Made by a program: the position numbers and the translations under genes. The notes beneath the pieces are model-generated. The model had not been told where the DNA came from, did not search any database, and worked only from the letters and a program-made list of their open reading frames with translations. Below are positions 6,449-39,579 of a DNA stretch of 64,000 bases, piece after piece. The stretch's first letter is position 1, and each line of letters begins with the position of its first letter. The stretch comes from Blastocladiella emersonii ATCC 22665 (taxonomy: Eukaryota; Fungi; Blastocladiomycota): assembly GCA_025594325.1 (NCBI GenBank), contig JANHCV010000001.1, positions 682,001-746,000 on the forward strand, written 5' to 3'.

Positions 6449-8844
6449 TCACTTGTGTCGCGGTTTCTTGGCCAGCGGTTCTTGGAGACTTGGTCCCGCG
6501 GACACCCTATACACACGCGCGCGCAAGTGAGCCTTTTCGCTTCGCATCAACCTCGCGAACATGAGAAACGTACGGCCGGTTGCCCTCGGTCAGCAGAATA
6601 CCCGGCGCGCCGACCACCTTCTGTCGCTCGAGCATGGCCGTGGTGAGGTCCGCGAGCCGGTCGCCCGACGCCATCTGCTCCTGGCGCCGCCGCTCCTCGT
6701 CCTTGCGCGCAATCTTCTCCTGCTTGTTCTTGCCGCCCTTGCGCCCGTGGAACGGGTGCGACAGCTCCTTGTACGCCTACACACACATGCACGATCGTGT
6801 CAGTCCCTCGTCCACCATTTTGAGACAGCGCGCGAACGTACCTCCTTGGCCGTGAGCAACCGGCCCTGCGCGTTGTAGTGCTCGATGACGACGTTGGGCT
6901 TGTAGTTCTTGAGCCGCTCCGCCATGTCCTCGGGCTTGCGCTTGTTCGTTTTGGCCTTGCCGCCGCCAGCACCCGCCGTCGCGTTCTGCTCCCACTGCTG
7001 CCGCGCCTGGTACTCGCGCTCACGCGCCGCCCGGTCCGCATCCACCACGTCGAGCGCGCCGCGCTTGCGGAACAGCTCCATGGCCGCGCCCAGGCCCTTG
7101 TTGAGCACGGGCTCCTCCTCGAGCGGGTTGTGCTGGTCGTCAGCGTCGTCGGCTTCGTCGGTGTGCTCCTGCTTGATGGTGGTCGACGCGGGCTCCGTCT
7201 TGAGCAGGATCGCGTCGACCTCGTCGAGCTCCATGTCGTCGTCGACGGCAGCAGCAGCAGCTTGCGCAGCATCGTGCTCGCGCTTGATCTTGACCTCGGC
7301 CTCGTGCGCCGCGGCGTCGGCCGCCGCCGTGTCGATGCTGCGCACAAACTCGGTCGTCGCGTCGAACACGAGCGTCCCATCCTCGTCGGCCGCGTCGCCG
7401 TCCACGTCCATGTCGTTGGTCGGCGTGGCCGCGGCGTTGCGCTCGAGGTCCAGGGCAACCTCGTCGACGCTCGGCAGCGCCTTGGCGCGGCGGCGCACGG
7501 CGCGGGCGCGCGTCGCGGTCAGCATCGACTGCAGGTCGTCGTCGTCGACGAAGCTCGTGGTCGCCGACTCGCTGAAGTCGCGGTCGCGGTTCGTCACTAC
7601 GGCGTCGGTGATGGCGTCCGGGTCGAGCTTGGTGCGGCGCTGGTTCTTCTTGGACTTTTTCTAGCGGAGTCGGCGAGGGGGGCGGGGTGAGTGGTTGGAG
7701 GTGCGGGCGATGGGCGCGAGGGAGCGCGTACCTTCTTCTTGATGGTCATCTCGGACGCGGACTTGAAGTCGTCGATCTGCTTCTGCTCTACACTCGCACC
7801 ACACCTTGTCAGTTTGAGCTCGCCGATCCGCGCAGCATCCGCAAAACACGTACTTTCGTACTCGAGCGATAGCGCCTTGGCCTCGAGCATCTCCTCGGCG
7901 GTAGGCTGCTCACCCTTGACGATCTGGGCGCCGTCCTCGCCGAGCACGTAGCGGCGCGCGGGCGCCTTGGCCTTGCCGCTGACCTCGTCGATGAACTCGT
8001 CGTACTGCGCGAGCACGCCGCGGCGCGCGGGCGCGGCGGAGCCCATGGTCATGGTCTCGAGCTCGTCGTCGTCGTAGCCCGAGTAGCCCGGACGCTTCGA
8101 CTTGGCGGCCAGCGCCTCGCGCGCCTTCTCGACGTCGCGCAGAGTCGCGTTCTCGAGCTCGTCCTCGCCGTCTACACGCCCGAGGAGAGGTGAGCGTGGT
8201 CTGAGTCGGGATGGGTGAGGAATGCGTACCGTCCAGCACGCCCGTGTCCTTGAGCGTAAGAATCATCTCCTGCCCCTCGACGAGATCCGCCTCGAGATCG
8301 TGCGCGACCGAGAGCCCCGCGAGGTCGCGCGCCGTGTACTCCTCCTCATCTCCGCCGCTCACTGCTGCCGTCGCGCGCGCCTTCCACCTCCGCTTCGCCG
8401 CGGCGGCCGCGCTCTCAGAAACCGACTCGGCCTCCTCGATCGTCGCGCGCGTGCGCGCCGCCATCGCCTTCTGGCGGGCGACCCACGCGGCGGCGTCCTC
8501 GTCGGCCTCGCCGTCACCAAGCGTGGCGCCGACGAGCGTCTCGCGCAGCTTGCGGCGGTTGCGCGACCGCTCGAGCCGTTTCGCGACCTCGGCGGCCTCG
8601 CGCGTGCGCGCCGCGGTCGTCGACTGCGCGGCAAAGTTGGCGGCTGCGCGCACGTCTGCGTCCGAGCTCGTCAGGACCAGGGGTTTCAGGCCCAGGCTCG
8701 CGCGAAGCTTGTTGGTCTCCTCGACCGACAGGGAGATCTCGACTTGCGCTTCGGCGCCGTCTAGACGCGCGGATGGCGGTTGTCAGAGAAAGGGGCGGTT
8801 GGGCCGCGAGGGGCTGATGCATTACCGTGCTCGAGATGATCCAT
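6449..8844 (-). CDS. SART1: U4/U6.U5 tri-snRNP-associated protein 1 (SART1/Snu66), multi-exon
   Basis: HIND motif 'ISLSVEETNKLRASLGLKPL', 'LAGLSVAHDL..EGQEMILTLKDTGVLD', 'YKPNVVIEHY..GRLLTAKE|AYKELSHPFHG'. Start MDHLEH at 8844 and stop at 6449 inferred from GT-AG introns. Confidence 0.9.
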
Positions 8845-9328
8845 GGTGGGTGATTCAAAGACGTTGCTGCAAGTTGGACAACTTGGCAAGCGACGGGGTC
8901 AAGGATCGCGAGGAGGAGAGAGGTCGGATGACTTGGCGGGTCGGTGCCGGCTTGTTCGCCGAGCGCGCCGTCTGCGGCTCCTTCTCTCCCCGCGTGCAAG
9001 ATGATACATCATGTAACTTGGACGATTATTCCGGAACAACCTGATGCAGCTGTCGATCTCTATGCCATGTGCTACTTTGCTGTCGACGGGATGCCGCGAC
9101 GCACCGTCGCGCTCGAGGCGAAGGGCGTCGAGGGGAAGGACCTCGCTGTTGCCGCCTGAGCGCTCTCATGTGCTCCGCCTCGGCGCTTCCGATGTTCACC
9201 ATGTTAGCTTCATGTTGGTCTCTCAGAATGACATGAGGGGACCCGGTGTCGCGCCCGTCAACGCGGTTGACTCGCCGTTGAACGCTCAGACCTGAGGTTC
9301 CACGCCATTTCTCAATCGAATCCGTACA

Positions 9329-10510
9329 TCATCGACCGAGCGCACCGCCAACCATCGTAATCGCGCCCGTATACGGCGACCGGGCCATGAACCGGAGCCC
9401 CGACCGCGCCCACCACTCGAACGCCTCGGGGCACCGGCCATCGAGCCGCCCGGGCATCTCGGGCGCGTACTTGAGCTCGAGCCCCGAGTGCAGCCACCAG
9501 TCGAGCACCGCGATCTGCCCGTTGCGCGATGCGAGGTCGAGCGCCGACTCGTCGTACTCGAACTTGAGGTCCGCTTGCGCGCGCCACCACTCGAGCACGT
9601 CGACGCTGCCGTACCGCGACGCGAGAGTGAGGATCCGCGCCGGCTTGTACTCGATCGTGATCCCGCTCGCGCGCCACCACTCGAGGATGCGGACCTGGTT
9701 GAGCTGCGCCGCGTTCTCGAGAATCTGCCGGCGCCACGCCGTGCACGTTTCCGTGCGCAGCAGCCAGTCGAGGACGTGCACATGGCCGCGCAACGCCGCT
9801 TCCTCGGCTCCCTCGGCCACCACGTCGTTCCGCGGATACGACCCGGCGTCCATCCACCACTGCAGCACGCCGACGTGCCCGTTCACGCACGCGCCGCGGA
9901 ACGCTGCGCTTGGGTACCGCAGCTGCCGCGCGCCCGCGTACTCGCGCCACCACTCGAGCACCGCGATCTGCCCCGCGGACGACGCCTGGACGAGCGCCTC
10001 GGCCGTGAAAGTGAACGGGAGCCCGCTTCGCTGCCACCACTCGAGCACCGCGGTATGCCCCTGCGCGCTCGCGATGCTGAGCACGTCGTCCGAGTGCGCG
10101 ACCGCGAGCCCCGAGCCCATCCACCAGTCGAGCACGTGCGTGCGGCCCGCGAAACACGCGCGGTCGATGGCGCGCGCGCCGTACTTGAGCTCGAGCCCCG
10201 AGCACAGCCACCAGTCGAGGACGTGCGTGTGCCCGTGCTCGCACGCGAGATCGATGGGCTCCTCGTCGTAATGCAGCGGCAGCTTGGCGTCAAACCGCCA
10301 CCAGCACAGCGCCGCGAGGTTGCCGCGGCCCGACGCCTGGTGCAGCGAGCACCACGGCAGCTGTGGGATCACGGCGCGCTGGACGACAACCGACGTCTTG
10401 GGCAGCACGTAGAGGTAGTTGAGCAGGTGCGCGAACGGCTGCGGTGAACGCGCCGCGAAGACGAGGATGCGCTCGAGGATGCTGGTCGGGAAATCGGCTG
10501 GGCTGGTCAT
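9329..10510 (-). CDS. Ankyrin-repeat protein of the 'GHxxVLxWW' type with F-box-like N-terminus
   Basis: About 10-11 repeats such as ACEHGHTHVLDWW, ASAQGHTAVLEWW, ASRNGQIAVLDWW. N-terminus DFPTSILERILVFA. ATG at 10510 chosen inside the longer 9329..10807 ORF. Confidence 0.8.
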   Translation of the reverse strand: MTSPADFPTSILERILVFAARSPQPFAHLLNYLYVLPKTSVVVQRAVIPQLPWCSLHQASGRGNLAALCWWRFDAKLPLHYDEEPIDLACEHGHTHVLDWWLCSGLELKYGARAIDRACFAGRTHVLDWWMGSGLAVAHSDDVLSIASAQGHTAVLEWWQRSGLPFTFTAEALVQASSAGQIAVLEWWREYAGARQLRYPSAAFRGACVNGHVGVLQWWMDAGSYPRNDVVAEGAEEAALRGHVHVLDWLLRTETCTAWRRQILENAAQLNQVRILEWWRASGITIEYKPARILTLASRYGSVDVLEWWRAQADLKFEYDESALDLASRNGQIAVLDWWLHSGLELKYAPEMPGRLDGRCPEAFEWWARSGLRFMARSPYTGAITMVGGALGR

Positions 10511-33242: not shown

Positions 33243-36200
33243 TCACTTGGTCCGGTACACGCTCAAAATCTTCTGCACATGCGGGGGCGCGACGACGCCA
33301 TACACCGCCCCCTTCGCGCTCCCCATCCCTGGGTGCTCGGCCTCCCACCGCTCGCGGTTCGCCTGCACCGCCTCGCGCGCGCGCTGCACGACCGCCGCCG
33401 GCGCGCCCGCCTGCCCGTACTGCTTGGCGATCCCGGGCACCTCGAGCACGCTGCCGCCGCGCGCGACGGCGTCGACGACCGCCACGATGCCCGCGGGCCC
33501 GATCCCGCAGTTGGTCAGGTTGAGCACGCGCAGGGTTTTCGAGTGTGCGACGGCGGACGCGATCGACACGGCGCCCGCATCGCCCAGCGCGTTGCCGACG
33601 CCGCCCATGACCAGCGTCCCGCGGTAGTACCCGAGGTGCAGCATCGCGAGCGCCGGGTGCGCGCGCACCGCGTCGCCGAGCGCGGCGGCGCCCGCGGGGC
33701 CGATCCCGTTGGACGCGAGCACGAGCCGCTGCAGCTTCGTATCCTTGGCCACGCCGCGCGCGAGCGCCGCCGTGCCCGCGTCGCCGAACCGGTTGCACGA
33801 CATGGACAGCGACTCGAGCGCCGCGCCGCCCGACGCGAGGAGGTCGCCGAACGCCTCGGCCGCGACGGGCGTGAGGTGGTTGGCGTCGAGGTACAGGTGC
33901 CGGAGCCCGGATCCCGAACCCGCGGCCGTCAGCGCGCGCGCGAGGGCGACGGCGCCCGCGTCCTGGATCCCCGTGTTGACGAGGTCGAGCACCGCGAGCG
34001 TCGTGTTAACACACAAAACGCGCGCGAGGTGGGCCGCGCCGTCGGCCAAAATCGGGTTGCGCTTGAGCCACACGGCCGAGATCTGCTGCGCCTGCGGGTC
34101 GAGCAGCGCGTCGGCGAGCACGCCCGCGTCGTCGGCGTCAAAGTCGTTGCCGCCAATGTACCACGTGCGGATCGCCGACCGCGGGTCGCGCATCGCCGCC
34201 GCGATCCGCCGCGCGCCCGCGGAACCCGTGATGTTGTTCCCGATCATGAGCGTATCGATGGCCGCCGCCGCCGACGTGTCGTGCGAGACCGCCATGGCAT
34301 CGAGCAGCGGGCCGATCCCCATGGGACCGACCACGTTCTTGCACAGGTCGAGCCGCGTCCCGTCGATCACGGTGCCGCGCGGGAACGCCACCTCCTTCTT
34401 CTCCCCACCCAAAACGTCGCTGCGCTGCAGGTACGTCAGGAGATCATCGAGCTCGTCGAGCGCACACGGGACGACCGGCTCAGGCTCGGGGTGCACGACC
34501 GCGCGGGACGCCGGCGCCGCGAGCATCGCCGCGCGCTCGACGTCGCCCGCGACCGCCGCCGTCCGCGGCTGCTTGGCCGCGCGGAAGTACGTCTCGGCCG
34601 AATGCGCCTCGTGCGCGCGCGCGAGCCGCGCCACGAGCCGCTGGTACGCCGCGTGCGACCGCTGCCGCTGGTACTCGGCGCGTTTCGGGTCCGCGTCCGC
34701 GGAAACGGGGAACAGGGCGAGCGCAATGGACTCGGCGAGACGCGACCCGCGGTTCACCGCGCTCTGCAGCCGCGGCGCGCGCACCGCGCACATGCTCGGG
34801 ACCGCGGGCTCGGCGGCGTCGTTCGTCTCCTCGGAGTCCTCGAGCTCGGCGTCGCCCGACGCGACCGCGGGCAGCCCGCGCGCGTCCTCGCGCAGCTGGT
34901 TGACGAACGCGTGCGTGACCGCGCGCTTGACGTCGGCCGCGACCTCGTCCTCCGACCCGCGCGCCGCGGCAGCGACCGCGGCCAGGACTACGAGCGGGCG
35001 CCACGAGTGCGCGAACTTGGGCACCACGGCCACGAGGTCGGCGAGGTGCGCCGCGCGCGCCTGCGAGTGCGCGAGCGCAGTCACAGCGACCGCGGCAAAC
35101 GCCTCGCCTGGGACATCCGCCTCGGACGCGGGCGCGCGCGCGTGAAGGAGCGTCAGCGCGACAAGGAGCAGGCCGCGGACCGTGAGCTCGCCGCCGCCCG
35201 GCGAGGACGAGAGGAGGGCCGAGGTCTCGGCGGCCCAGTCGACGGTCAGGTTGGTCAGGTCGAGCTTGGGCGGATACGCGACGAGGGCGCCGAGGACCGG
35301 GTGTGCCTTGATCGCGGCGCGGAGGTCACCGGGCAGCCCGACGGGGGCCGGGACCAGCGCGTCGCCGCGGCGCGCGACGAGGCCCGCGCCTGTCGACGCC
35401 CCGCGGGTGCGGTTCGCCGCGAGGATGCGGTGGTACAGCGCCGTGGTCGCGTCGGCCATCTCGGCGAGCGACGCGTCGCCCGGCAGCGAAGCCGCGACCG
35501 CGGCGTCGAAGTCGGCGGCGACCGTGTTCTTGACCGCGAACCGGCGCGCGAACTCCGCGACCGCGTCGAGCGGCCAGTGCTGCGGTGTGAAGTGGCCGCC
35601 GGGGTGCTCGAGGACCTCGGGCGCGTCCGCGTAAAGCGACGCAAGCGCGCGCGTGTTGGCCTCCATGACGGCGGGCGGGCCGAGGTGCTCGTCGTGTTTC
35701 CCGTAGATGTGGAGCGACGCGACGCCCGTGACGCTGCCCGGCGTGACGAGCGCAGCGTGCGCGGCAGCGCGCGACGGAAAGCCCGAGATGCACACGGCGA
35801 ACCGGTGCGGGAACCGCGCTTTGAGCGCCGACAGGAGCCCAATGAGCGTGGCGCCTTGCGAAAACCCGAGCAGCCCGTCGAACGGACCCTGCTCGGCAAA
35901 CACCGTGTCGAGGTACGTCAGCGTCGTGTCGGCGCCGTCGTACACGGTCTCGCCAGTCTCGGCGGATTTGCGAGCGTTCCACCACGCGCGCTGGTGCGGG
36001 ACCGCATGCGCCGGGCCCGCGACGCCCGTGCCGGCGTCAGCCGACGCGAGGTACGCGCGCGGCCCGTTGACGTGCACGAGCTCGAGGTGGCACGTGTCGC
36101 CCAGCAGCGACGTCAGCTTGCGCACGGCGCGGCGCAGCGTGTGCGAGTTCTGCCGGTACCCGTGCAGTACGAGCACGCGCATCGGGAGGTACTCGAGCGG

Positions 36201-37010
36201 CGCAGCCGCAGCCGAGGTGGTGGTGCTGGCCGTCTCGGCAGGAGCAGCGGCGACGGGCTCGCGCTTCTCGACCGACTTCATGAACAGCCGCTTGCGGCCC
36301 GACATGAACACGGCCTCGTCGGGCGTCAAGTCACGCCCGAGCACCGTGTTGCGGTACGGGTACCGGCCGAACTGGTCGACAATCTCCTGGTGACGGACCG
36401 CCGACGTCGCGTTGCTGCGGAACGTAGCCGGGTGGGCGAACCCCTTGGCCTCGACCTCGTCCGCGAGCGCCGCCATGAGCTCGGCGCCGCGCTTGACGGC
36501 CGTGCGGTCCTCGACGTGAACGAGCGGCATGTACAGGAACAGCCGCTCAGCGGGCGCGAACACGGTCGTGTACCCCGGGTCGCGCAGGACCGACTCGGTG
36601 AGCTGCACCGCGAGCGCGTCGGCCGCGAACATGCGCGGGTCGCCGCGGTACACGTGGCGCGAGAACTGGTCGGCGACCACGATCAGCGCGAGCGTGCCGC
36701 GCGGCGTGCGCGACCAGCGCGCGACGATCGAGTCGGCGGCGGGCGACGCCAGGTGCGCGTGCACCGCCTCGACGTGCGCGCCGAAGTGGCGCGTGATGTG
36801 CGCGTCGACGGCCGCGTCGTTGTGGAACCACAGCTTGGCCGGCGGGCGGTACGACAGCGCGTGCGCGTCGTCGGTGCCGAACCAGTACGCGAGCACGGCG
36901 CGGACCGCCTTGGCGTCGGCGCCGGACAGCTGCGACGCGCCGGGCGAGGCGCCGGTGATGATCTCGACCGTAGTGTCGGCGGTAGAATCGGCGTGCGTCG
37001 TGAGAGTCAT
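33243..37010 (-). CDS. Intronless 1255-aa fusion: DUF924 + FSH1-type serine hydrolase + unknown helical region + RNI-like LRR
   Basis: DUF924 motifs (VLAYWF, ALIVVADQFSRHVYRG, FLYMPLVHVE, HQEIVDQFGRYPYRNTVLGR). FSH1 motifs (RVLVLHGYRQN, GPFDGLLGFSQG, HIYGKHD, HPGGHFTP). LRR motifs (LDLCKNVVGP, VWLKRNPI, LDLVNTGI). ATG at 37010 preferred over the GTG at 37076. Confidence 0.85.
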   Translation of the reverse strand: MTLTTHADSTADTTVEIITGASPGASQLSGADAKAVRAVLAYWFGTDDAHALSYRPPAKLWFHNDAAVDAHITRHFGAHVEAVHAHLASPAADSIVARWSRTPRGTLALIVVADQFSRHVYRGDPRMFAADALAVQLTESVLRDPGYTTVFAPAERLFLYMPLVHVEDRTAVKRGAELMAALADEVEAKGFAHPATFRSNATSAVRHQEIVDQFGRYPYRNTVLGRDLTPDEAVFMSGRKRLFMKSVEKREPVAAAPAETASTTTSAAAAPLEYLPMRVLVLHGYRQNSHTLRRAVRKLTSLLGDTCHLELVHVNGPRAYLASADAGTGVAGPAHAVPHQRAWWNARKSAETGETVYDGADTTLTYLDTVFAEQGPFDGLLGFSQGATLIGLLSALKARFPHRFAVCISGFPSRAAAHAALVTPGSVTGVASLHIYGKHDEHLGPPAVMEANTRALASLYADAPEVLEHPGGHFTPQHWPLDAVAEFARRFAVKNTVAADFDAAVAASLPGDASLAEMADATTALYHRILAANRTRGASTGAGLVARRGDALVPAPVGLPGDLRAAIKAHPVLGALVAYPPKLDLTNLTVDWAAETSALLSSSPGGGELTVRGLLLVALTLLHARAPASEADVPGEAFAAVAVTALAHSQARAAHLADLVAVVPKFAHSWRPLVVLAAVAAAARGSEDEVAADVKRAVTHAFVNQLREDARGLPAVASGDAELEDSEETNDAAEPAVPSMCAVRAPRLQSAVNRGSRLAESIALALFPVSADADPKRAEYQRQRSHAAYQRLVARLARAHEAHSAETYFRAAKQPRTAAVAGDVERAAMLAAPASRAVVHPEPEPVVPCALDELDDLLTYLQRSDVLGGEKKEVAFPRGTVIDGTRLDLCKNVVGPMGIGPLLDAMAVSHDTSAAAAIDTLMIGNNITGSAGARRIAAAMRDPRSAIRTWYIGGNDFDADDAGVLADALLDPQAQQISAVWLKRNPILADGAAHLARVLCVNTTLAVLDLVNTGIQDAGAVALARALTAAGSGSGLRHLYLDANHLTPVAAEAFGDLLASGGAALESLSMSCNRFGDAGTAALARGVAKDTKLQRLVLASNGIGPAGAAALGDAVRAHPALAMLHLGYYRGTLVMGGVGNALGDAGAVSIASAVAHSKTLRVLNLTNCGIGPAGIVAVVDAVARGGSVLEVPGIAKQYGQAGAPAAVVQRAREAVQANRERWEAEHPGMGSAKGAVYGVVAPPHVQKILSVYRTK

Positions 37011-39579
37011 GCTACATCGGCGTGAGGCGTCAGACCGTGTATCGCGTGTCAGCGCGGAGGGTGTGACGGAACTCACGTTGTGGTTTTGGGCAGGAACGCT
37101 TCGTCCTCGATATGGGAAGGCTTCACGTTGATCAATTCATTCGAATGCAGGAGGTTCTGTCGGTCTTTTGAACGATTTCGTGTCCATGGCGAAGGGGAGG
37201 AGGAAGCGAGGGTCGGCAGCGACCAGCCGTGGGAATCGAGTCACTTCGCCACCGCGCTGAGCCCATCGACTCGATTCGCCGTCGCTCGCGAGCAACAACA
37301 TTGAAAGTTCGCAGAAGAAGCTAGAAGCTTAGTTGTGGCTAGCGAGATGGTTGTAAGTCGTCATGGCTTGGGTTCAAGTTCGCCTGGCTCGGACCCCAAG
37401 TCGACTCGACAGTGAGGACTGCGGAGTGGGTTCACCAACCATGGAAGCTTCCATCAAAGTCCTTCGGAAACCTGTTACACGTCCGGATCCACCATGGTTT
37501 ACATGGCGGCAAAGGCGGCAACGCGACCGGGCGGCAGGACGCGTCTGTCGGTCACGTGGTAACGTGGTGTGGCGCAGCGCGTCCGCGCCACGCCTGATCG
37601 CGACCTTCGCCTGCCCGGCGCTCAAGAGGATCTGCCCCTCCGAGCTTTCCTGCAATAGCTTGAGCACGAACGTGTCGGTCAGTGCGATTGCAGCCGCGAT
37701 CAACGCCGATCCAGTCTCCCGCGGTGACCAGCGTGGCGCGACGCGTCTCCCGCTCCCTTGCGCGGCAACGACGTGTGTCTCACACCGCGACCAAATAAGA
37801 AAGCTCTAAATCCCACAAAAAAGAACGCTGAAACTGAGTTACGCTCCAGTACACCGCTCGTACGGATCCAGGGAATACAAAAGGTAAAAGTCGTCTTGGT
37901 GCCCGCCTGCAAGCTGTCGCGTTCCATCACAGTAGCCAGAAGCCATCCCCAACCGGTGGGGGGTATCGAACACTGTCATTCGCACCCGCCCACGCCCAAA
38001 GTTGGTGGTCTCCGAGACCCTCCGGCCCACGCTGCAGGCAATCCTATAGCGATCGACCGCGACCGTGACGCGTGCGGCCGCTTCCCCCCTGCGCCGCTAC
38101 TTGCTGCGTCCCGCGGCTTCGTGCTCTGCCACCCTCCGCTAATGAGAAAGTTTACATGGAAGTAAACGAACCTCGTCACGGGTGTGGACGGGTCAATTCA
38201 TGCTCAGCCTCGTCCTGGCGGACGACCGCGCTCCCGCCCCTCGCCCCACGCCCCTTGCCCCTCGCCGCTGCCACTGGGCGAGGCGCACGTGCATATCGTT
38301 GACGTGATCGACATCAAGGACGGGCCCTGCGTCAAGATCCCCTTGGGCCCGGTCATAATCGCTGGTCAGACACCAGCAGCGTGTGACAAGATTCTCACGG
38401 CGACGCTCGTTGCGTTCCGCTCGATCGGCATCGGTCAGCGCGCGAGTCAAGGTGACAGCCAGCCCATCATCCTCTTGGGCGCTGCGGCGCTCAGCAAGGT
38501 GCTCAGCAACGATGTGTACACGTCCAATCGGAAGGTCCAGTTCATGCACTTCGGCGCTTCACGGCGTCGTCCAGATGATCCAAGTTCTCAACAACCTTTC
38601 TGCTCACCGCGGCGCACCGCTTGTGATCCTCAAGGCGCGCGTCAGCAACCTAGCGACCATCGCCACTGCGCACCTGACCTTGGCCTTCGCGACCGCAGCG
38701 TCCTCGGTCGTGAACGGTCCCAGCGATGCAACCTCAAACCGATTTGACGACGTGGACCGCAAAAAAATGGTATTGCGCCGACCAAGATGCCGTACGACCC
38801 GCGCCACTCGCTGCACTGACATCGCAGCGGGACGGGCGCGTGAGTCGACTGGTTCTTTGACTGAGTCCCATGAACCGACACCATGGCCGGGTGCTTGAAA
38901 ACCTGACGCTGCGGGCAAGCTGCGCTTGGGAATAAGACGGCGTGGGCGGCCCGCAACCTCGGCCGCAAGGGTCGCTCCCGCTGATCGATTTCGCCAACTC
39001 CACCGATCGATGACCTCTAGGCTCGCGTCGATGGAACACGACAATGTATCAGTCAACACCCTTTTGCCCTCCCGCGTTGCGTCGCGTGTCCCCGTGTTTC
39101 GTGTCCGAGTTAGGTGCGCACATTCTTATTGCAAATTGAATCGATAAATCTGGCCAGGGGCCTGTTTTGCCCGCGTTGCCGGCGCGTCCGTGTGTGCGAG
39201 ACACGGGTGCGAGACGTGTCGAACAATCACTGATCGAGGCCGGCCAATCAGCGCTTGCGGTTGGGCGCCTCGGGCGCCACCGCCGCCGCGGTCGTCGCCG
39301 TCTCGATCTACCCGCCGTTAGTTCCGCTGCCCCGAACTTGATGAGGACACTTGGCTCTCCATGCATTGCGCTTGAATCGCCCGACAGAACAGGTCCCCGC
39401 CGCGGATTGTCACTATGCTTACGCGCAGCCAGCCGCCATCCCGGACCCAGCCGCCGGCGCCCGCGGTTTCCCATCAACCCTCGTCCTCCAGCAGTGTTGC
39501 ACCTCCTCTCCATCAACTGCCCGCACCACCTACGCAGCCCACGCTTCCACTTCCAGCGCGGCAGCCCACCAAGTTTGAT

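Follow-up and report, generated by a model that had tools for sequence, protein, structure and literature searches.

Using sequence, profile and structure comparisons, we analysed a window of 64,000 nucleotides from the blastocladiomycete fungus Blastocladiella emersonii ATCC 22665 (GenBank assembly GCA_025594325.1, contig JANHCV010000001.1, positions 682,001 to 746,000 of the forward strand) and, within it, the minus-strand gene at positions 33243..37010. It encodes a protein of four modules, predicted to be cytosolic: a DUF924 domain, an FSH1/OVCA2-type serine hydrolase, a DUF2828-like α-solenoid and a C-terminal leucine-rich repeat (LRR) module that we call LRR-SVYR. With moderate confidence, we favour the view that this is a genuine single gene for a scaffolded FSH1 (thio)esterase, in which LRR-SVYR serves as the adaptor for a partner or ligand that is conserved, and that the protein is not a receptor of the nucleotide-binding leucine-rich repeat (NLR) type. 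The protein belongs to an uncharacterised family that is widely but patchily distributed. Uniqueness of its architecture is rejected here, as is the analogy to NLRs drawn in an earlier interpretation of the window from its letters alone (the sequence-only reading), and the impression of a unique NLR-like fusion gives way to that of an ordinary resident gene.

The fusion is conserved across myxobacteria, fungi, rotifers, algae and contigs the size of giant viruses. Being fixed, it gives a guilt-by-association handle on DUF924, FSH1/OVCA2 and DUF2828 together, all of which are widespread and poorly understood. New in this work are the DUF2828-like solenoid, the specific LRR module, the constraint on the LRR, the recurrent replacement of the catalytic serine by alanine, and the AlkB and ankyrin N-termini of some relatives.

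Gene structure and the modules of the protein

The open reading frame (ORF) extends over 33243..37076 on the minus strand, where all features of the gene given below lie, and comprises 1277 open codons, with the stop at 33243-33245. Its first ATG, at 37010, opens a main coding exon of 1255 codons (33243..37010) that holds all the domains, both by our reading of the ORF and in the public annotation. A word search identified the annotated product as hypothetical protein H9P43_000252 (1261 aa), which is 100% identical over the ORF. The only extras of this model are a first coding exon of 17 nt, known from prediction only (37479..37495, encoding MVDPD and the first two nucleotides of a Val codon), and a 467-nt intron (37012-37478, with GTAACA at its 5' end and TGTAG at its 3' end). 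Since the public model adds nothing beyond these, all domains are encoded in one uninterrupted exon, as the sequence-only reading had stated. The N-terminus derived from the 17-nt exon shows no conservation among relatives; either start is possible, and the domains are unaffected by the choice. For the analyses the window was searched as a single exon and the 1261-aa database protein was taken unaltered. A second possible intron signal (37012-37076, GTGAGT...TGTAG) is found in the open stretch upstream of the ATG at 37010.

Pfam matches and structural models agree with the order of modules first read from the sequence, namely DUF924, FSH1, a helical region and LRRs of the ribonuclease-inhibitor (RNI) type, and the proposed domain ranges fit. 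The DUF924 domain (36300..36896) is matched by PF06041 over ORF residues 61-259 (E 1.1e-47, 163 bits against a gathering cut-off of 27). Its AlphaFold2 (AF2) model, with a predicted local distance difference test score (pLDDT) of 95, displays an all-helical fold resembling tetratricopeptide repeats (TPR) and superposes on Atu0120 (PDB 2i6h) with Z 22.4 and a root mean square deviation of 1.7 Å over 173 residues (VIA); UpxZ comes next (Z 8.6), ahead of generic TPR-like proteins. Besides the fold, the domain shares with Atu0120 the conserved Arg-rich motif FGR[YF]PxRNxxLGR, whereas typical DUF924 proteins are free-standing and about 200 aa long and the domain is permanently joined to FSH1 in the B. 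emersonii family. According to the model, DUF924 is probably a ligand- or peptide-binding helical fold. Literature searches for DUF924, COG3803, PF06041, 2i6h and DUF2828 returned nothing functional.

The FSH1-family α/β hydrolase domain (35577..36182) is matched by PF03959 over ORF residues 299-500 (E 4.1e-35, 121.8 bits against a gathering cut-off of 21). A family profile recovers yeast Fsh1 (1ycd) at E 1.2e-23; the same homology was not recovered with the single B. emersonii sequence as the query, without a profile. The Ser-Asp-His triad is complete, at the positions typical of the FSH1 family and at exactly the coordinates first read. By sequence and alignment, the nucleophile elbow GFSQG (35853..35867) contains Ser390 of the 1261-aa protein (codon 35859-35861). 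Asp446 (codon 35691..35693, in HIYGKHD) is invariant in the first 11 relatives and conserved as Asp in 84 of 85, and His479 (codon 35592..35594, in HPGGH) is a histidine in all 85. The domain of B. emersonii is predicted from its sequence to be active as a hydrolase. The GxSxG elbow and the Asp and His at family positions are common to the FSH1/OVCA2 hydrolases (yeast Fsh1-3, human OVCA2 and the fungal LovG-type enzymes), of which OVCA2 and Fsh1 are esterases preferring straight-chain alkyl esters, long-chain ones in the case of OVCA2 (PMC7077851). The known members are free-standing proteins of about 220-270 aa; the B. emersonii domain, in contrast, is placed between DUF924 on one side and a solenoid plus LRR of about 760 residues on the other. 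In other bacteria, no DUF924 or LRR gene adjoins the free-standing FSH1 genes.

The middle region (34494..35516, protein residues ~505-845) is predicted by AF2 to consist entirely of helices (pLDDT 83, predicted template modelling score 0.77). From the model and the conservation by domain, its first ~140 residues are weakly conserved and the remainder forms an α-solenoid. The core of the latter (34641..34949), with the motif SxCAxxAPR...LFP, is assigned as DUF2828-like from a Pfam match below cut-off, from the relatives and from a fold match. In B. emersonii the DUF2828 model (PF11443) scores only 16-18.5 bits against a cut-off of 29 (E 0.001-0.005, ORF residues 710-812); it is matched in 20 of 26 relatives (best E 6.3e-9), and the part covered is limited to profile positions ~194-280 of 405. 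The best ESM-Atlas fold match of the region is to DUF2828+DUF7788 proteins, with a TM score of 0.46 over 221 residues. The likeness to the DUF2828 (+DUF7788/vWA) proteins of eukaryotes and Nucleocytoviricota consists of this partial profile and this predicted-structure match; the B. emersonii protein differs from them in matching a fragment, below cut-off, and in having no domain like von Willebrand factor A (vWA). We describe the region as a modelled α-solenoid spacer that resembles DUF2828 over a fragment of the profile only. Foldseek against the PDB gave nothing at E 0.001 or better, a language-model atlas search gave nothing usable, and the PDB matches found by VIA (Z 6.6 or less) lie within helical-repeat noise. 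This includes a weak fold match to a phage Ro60 (Z 5.0).

Conservation and occurrence of the LRR-SVYR module

The LRR part spans ~34490 to 33250, and the module starts with a Pro-rich lead-in at residue ~846. Alignments and conservation delimit an N-cap (34314..34493) with the pattern PxPxPVxP...LxPLL...FxxGT...GRLDLCKQVVGP, which is followed by RNI-type repeats (33429..34313), an invariant WLKRNP repeat among them, and, in the alignment of relatives, by a C-terminal SVYRT motif one residue from the end (33249..33263). The repeats are matched by LRR_6 (PF13516; E 2.2e-17, 62.1 bits against a cut-off of 23.4), and a profile of the LRR part finds the LRRs of ribonuclease inhibitor and NLRP proteins in the PDB at E 1e-44 to 1e-66 (ribonuclease inhibitor, E 4e-66). 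The N-cap and the tail are covered by no solved structure among these PDB matches, and the language-model atlas search with the LRR part returned generic RNI LRR clusters only. SVYRT occurs within the last 40 residues of 73 of the 85 relatives, most of the exceptions being truncated or extended models and three having a diverged tail; tails of this type are also present in stand-alone bacterial homologues. We define the module informally by an N-cap with FxxGT..GRLDLCKQ, the WLKRNP repeat and SV[YH]R a few residues from the C-terminus. All three are present in the B. emersonii protein, and they are common to the fusions and to the stand-alone bacterial proteins.

To describe conservation by domain we used the mean identity between eukaryotic and bacterial members of a set of 45 full-length proteins. 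This identity is highest in the N-cap (0.55) and the LRR (0.44), followed by FSH1 (0.39), DUF924 (0.33), the middle core (0.23) and the segment after FSH1 (0.13). Columns at least 90% conserved make up 45% of the N-cap and 22% of the LRR, and the module contains invariant Lys and Arg residues. On the evidence of these alignments, the LRR module and not the enzyme is the most constrained part of the protein.

LRR-SVYR is also a very common free-standing bacterial protein of 375-400 aa (Actinomycetota, Bacteroidota) that keeps the signature motifs. These proteins, annotated as 'gala protein' or 'ribonuclease inhibitor' in Streptomyces, Actinomadura, Bacteroidia and others, show 33-42% identity across the whole C-terminal module. 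The common motifs are FxxGT..DGRxDLCKQ in the N-cap, WLKRNP, LDLVxT and, at the C-terminus, SV[YH]R. Unlike the fusions, they stand apart from other domains; their genes are usually translationally coupled to that of a short-chain dehydrogenase/reductase (SDR) of ~452 aa, often with an ankyrin protein adjoining. Since the stand-alone proteins retain the invariant residues without DUF924 and FSH1, the conserved LRR surface most likely recognises an external target, common to Actinomycetota, Bacteroidota, Myxococcota and eukaryotes, and not its own N-terminal domains.

This conservation bears directly on the proposal, made in the sequence-only reading, of an NLR-like or anti-pathogen defence protein in which an LRR sensor triggers an enzymatic effector. 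A C-terminal LRR with an N-terminal enzyme does resemble a sensor-effector layout, the repeats have the 28-29 residues of the RNI type found in NLR/STAND receptors and ribonuclease inhibitors, and the family occurs in Myxococcota and on giant-virus-sized contigs. The B. emersonii protein, however, has no Pfam match to NACHT, NB-ARC or any other STAND NTPase, its full length is covered by other modules, and it contains no Walker A motif. PADLOC-DB returned 0 matches for it and for two bacterial homologues, and NCBIfam holds no family for the fusion. The bacterial fusion genes have no conserved neighbourhood, and most named eukaryotes yielded a single copy (Heterostelium gave two, Rotaria sordida several near-identical entries). 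Moreover, the surface residues of the LRR are conserved from bacteria to fungi, and a diversifying immune sensor is contradicted by an LRR that is the most conserved part across the bacteria-eukaryote split. The defence explanation is thus largely refuted, and we consider it very improbable.

Distribution and descent of the fusion

The combination of domains, first judged unusual, is already common in databases. An initial search recovered colinear full-length relatives, 31-42% identical over 97-100% of the query, in Catenaria anguillulae, Blastocladiella britannica, Sorochytrium milnesiophthora, Jimgerdemannia flammicorona and Planoprotostelium fungivorum and among metagenomic proteins. Adineta ricciae, Rotaria socialis, Rotaria sordida, Exidia glandulosa and Chromera velia came to light in a word search with a profile, and two paralogues of Heterostelium album and a protein from Rhodomonas through cluster look-ups. 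An exhaustive search with a hidden Markov model (HMM) of the DUF924+FSH1 didomain against 1.84 billion representatives (clusters at 50% identity) yielded ~46 representatives that span both domains end to end, in addition to ~25 partial ones; most are 880-1370 aa long. Lower in the same list, DUF924 (~200 aa) and FSH1 (~220 aa) occur as ordinary proteins on their own, in keeping with the earlier remark that both are usually small and free-standing. The suggestion that DUF924 partners functionally with an esterase also gains from the survey, the DUF924-FSH1 pairing being fixed across the whole family. All named members carry hypothetical or domain-level names only, and our literature searches found no paper on a DUF924-FSH1-solenoid-LRR family.

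When one genome of each prokaryotic species was scanned, 16 Myxococcota genomes proved to encode the complete protein (16 of 16 loci), including Pyxidicoccus fallax DSM 14698, Nannocystis, Polyangia and Bradymonadia. Each copy is a single ORF of ~910-1240 aa, except for one of 1502 aa that arises by read-through (locus L006). Locus L015 likewise encodes a full-length fusion and not DUF924-FSH1 by itself. The L006 ORF, from a Myxococcales metagenome-assembled genome (MAG), runs ~400 codons past SVYRT into sequence with a metallophosphoesterase-like GDxHG motif (L006:11090-12299); either a further fusion or the lack of a stop codon in a GC-rich MAG may account for this.

These single ORFs also decide on an artefact, that is, a misassembly or a merged gene model. 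Nothing but the unusual domain combination speaks for it, whereas the B. emersonii ORF is uninterrupted and the same colinear module order recurs within a single ORF in over 40 independent genomes, intron-free bacteria among them. We regard its probability as negligible.

Two viral contigs of IMG/VR, 439 kb and 154 kb long, carry a full-length copy, flanked by sequence of 25% GC with glycosyltransferase, collagen-repeat and ankyrin genes. An AlkB-fused copy (P0280; L040 8001-12203) lies on a 50-kb unclassified metagenome contig of densely packed, mostly orphan genes, where the annotated neighbours are an eIF-5/eIF-2B-domain protein, RNA_pol_N, NADAR, a protein kinase and a metallophosphatase. 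Judged from gene content, the IMG/VR and P0280 contexts look like those of giant viruses. On the 439-kb contig, GC reaches 37% in the interval L041:8001-12000, where most of the gene lies, as against ~25% in the 8 kb upstream and 28-31% in the downstream windows; this contrast is a hint that the virus may have acquired the gene fairly recently. On the same contig an ankyrin-repeat gene (7752-9839) is located directly upstream of the fusion gene, on the same strand.

Two kinds of N-terminal addition were observed. One of the Heterostelium album paralogues (P0139) has ankyrin repeats at residues ~70-220, and a sub-clade formed by Chromera P0130, P0159, P0162, P0170 and P0153/P0280 has an N-terminal AlkB-like 2-oxoglutarate (2OG)-Fe(II) oxygenase. 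The latter bears on a role in demodification or in the repair of alkylation damage of nucleic acid or protein, where the esterase would remove an ester-type modification beside oxidative AlkB demethylation in those relatives that have the oxygenase. A whole sub-clade with the oxygenase speaks for such a role, as would the DUF2828-like middle region with its weak fold match to Ro60. By Pfam, however, the 2OG-FeII_Oxy_2 (AlkB-like) domain is absent from the B. emersonii protein, and the Ro60 match lies within the noise of helical repeats; we hold this explanation to be improbable.

The main groups are the same in trees of 26, 47 and 85 full-length proteins (support is given as values of the Shimodaira-Hasegawa-like approximate likelihood ratio test, SH-aLRT). 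The B. emersonii protein is placed with those of Catenaria and B. britannica (100), and Sorochytrium joins them next (98-99). This Blastocladiomycota clade is nested in a clade (100) of fungi, bdelloids, Planoprotostelium and Heterostelium. Chromera and Rhodomonas fall in a second clade (100), together with the AlkB fusions and the viral contigs, and the Myxococcota form two further clades. As the gene is nested in the Blastocladiomycota clade and its GC content (~0.73) equals that of the flanking genes, it is a resident gene of B. emersonii. Within the first clade the order departs from the species tree, with Planoprotostelium and Exidia paired (99-100), and for this reason we attribute the patchy distribution, as far as the trees indicate, to loss, to transfer between eukaryotes, or to both. 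In an LRR tree rooted on the stand-alone bacterial proteins all fusions fall in one clade (100), the base of which lacks resolution. By these trees, the fusion arose once and its LRR has bacterial relatives.

Proposed function, alternatives and neighbouring genes

In the 85-sequence alignment the nucleophile is Ser in 67 proteins and Ala in 17, and the full Ser-Asp-His triad is retained in 66. The Ala lineages, which include a Myxococcota sub-clade with Pyxidicoccus fallax, the bdelloid rotifers and others, keep the Asp, the His and the GFxQG context, and the tree requires at least six changes. Because the LRR is the most constrained part of the protein and also occurs free-standing beside an SDR, and because Ser has been replaced by Ala at least six times, we argue from the sequences that recognition of a conserved target, and not simple metabolic ester cleavage, would be the way in which the family works.

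In the mechanism that we propose, the LRR-SVYR module would be a portable adaptor binding one partner or ligand conserved between bacteria and eukaryotes, to which it would bring domains with enzyme folds: the FSH1 (thio)esterase together with DUF924 in the fusions, the operon-coupled SDR in other bacteria and, in some relatives, the extra AlkB-like dioxygenase. DUF924 and the solenoid would offer additional binding surfaces. In B. emersonii the hydrolase would act on an ester or thioester of the partner or ligand, and in lineages with an Ala nucleophile the FSH1 domain would probably serve for binding only.

Several results weigh against this mechanism. With a fifth of the relatives (17 of 85) lacking the catalytic serine, hydrolysis cannot be the function conserved throughout the family, which equally weakens the enzyme-effector idea of the sequence-only reading. 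The fold of DUF924 is TPR-like and without known activity. Two ORF-clustering approaches found no conserved neighbour gene beside the bacterial fusions and gave no hint of a partner, and the SDR operon is present in just four of the five distinct loci sampled.

The same substitutions raise the alternative of a ligand receptor or pseudoenzyme, in which FSH1 would be mainly a pocket for a small ester-like ligand, with optional turnover, and the solenoid and LRR an output scaffold, by analogy with the plant α/β-hydrolase receptors D14, KAI2 and GID1, which signal through LRR F-box proteins. Besides the recurrent loss of the serine within an otherwise preserved site, the better conservation of the LRR module than of the hydrolase agrees with such a function, as would HTNMAK, which by eye appears at the place of YxxxK in two of the partner SDRs. 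On the other hand, the full triad is kept by 66 of 85 relatives, B. emersonii among them; we consider this alternative rather unlikely.

A bolder extension of the adaptor mechanism, which we put forward only tentatively, is that LRR-SVYR may be an unrecognised portable adaptor that recognises a single, deeply conserved partner or ligand in the cell and recruits interchangeable enzyme folds to it (FSH1 with Ser or Ala, an atypical SDR, an AlkB-like dioxygenase, ankyrin partners), of which some would be catalytic and others would only bind, and that the whole DUF924-FSH1-solenoid-LRR cassette may have moved among giant viruses, Myxococcota and four or more supergroups of eukaryotes. If true, this would define a new signalling or repair module.

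The stand-alone LRR-SVYR gene lies directly downstream of the SDR gene, overlapping it or at most 16 nt away, in the four loci that have the operon. These two-gene units are found in Bacteroidia, in Actinacidiphila and on two metagenomic contigs (L034:5652-8185, L035:5638-8179, L037:4650-7185 and L039:4603-7197). The partner SDR bears an N-terminal CxxC..CxxC motif, is 45% identical between Bacteroidia and Actinacidiphila, and has FabG-type reductases as its best PDB and NCBIfam matches. In the alignment of these two partner SDRs, compared by eye, HTNMAK appears at what we take to be the place of the classical SDR motif YxxxK. By hhalign, the partner SDR is unrelated to the middle region of the B. 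emersonii protein.

DUF924 also has other fusion partners, namely an enoyl-CoA hydratase (ECH_1), an adenylosuccinate-lyase-like enzyme (Lyase_1+ADSL_C) and DUF6687 (P0271, P0132, P0257), and these fusions are further leads on its function. Together with the SDR, the first of them (P0271, DUF924 with enoyl-CoA hydratase) brings in the processing of acyl thioesters (acyl-CoA or acyl carrier protein), where the LRR module would bind the carrier protein and the attached enzymes would edit the acyl chain. The FSH1, FabG-like SDR and DUF924-enoyl-CoA hydratase folds all occur in acyl-thioester metabolism, and the LRR module has its invariant Lys and Arg; a passage of PMC10512364, citing Xu et al. 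(2013), describes LovG-type thioesterases as sharing the FSH1 fold. Nevertheless, these matches are generic and at the level of fold only, no polyketide synthase, fatty acid synthase or carrier-protein genes are conserved beside the fusions, and the AlkB and ankyrin additions do not fit, which leaves this reading quite improbable.

An ankyrin-repeat protein adjoins the stand-alone LRR-SVYR gene in three of the fetched loci, two of which come from the same protein (genes for 550-611 aa at L032:8131-9966, L037:7176-8900 and L038:2585-4237). The association with ankyrin repeats thus recurs in two forms, as an operon with stand-alone LRR-SVYR and as a fusion in the Heterostelium album paralogue.

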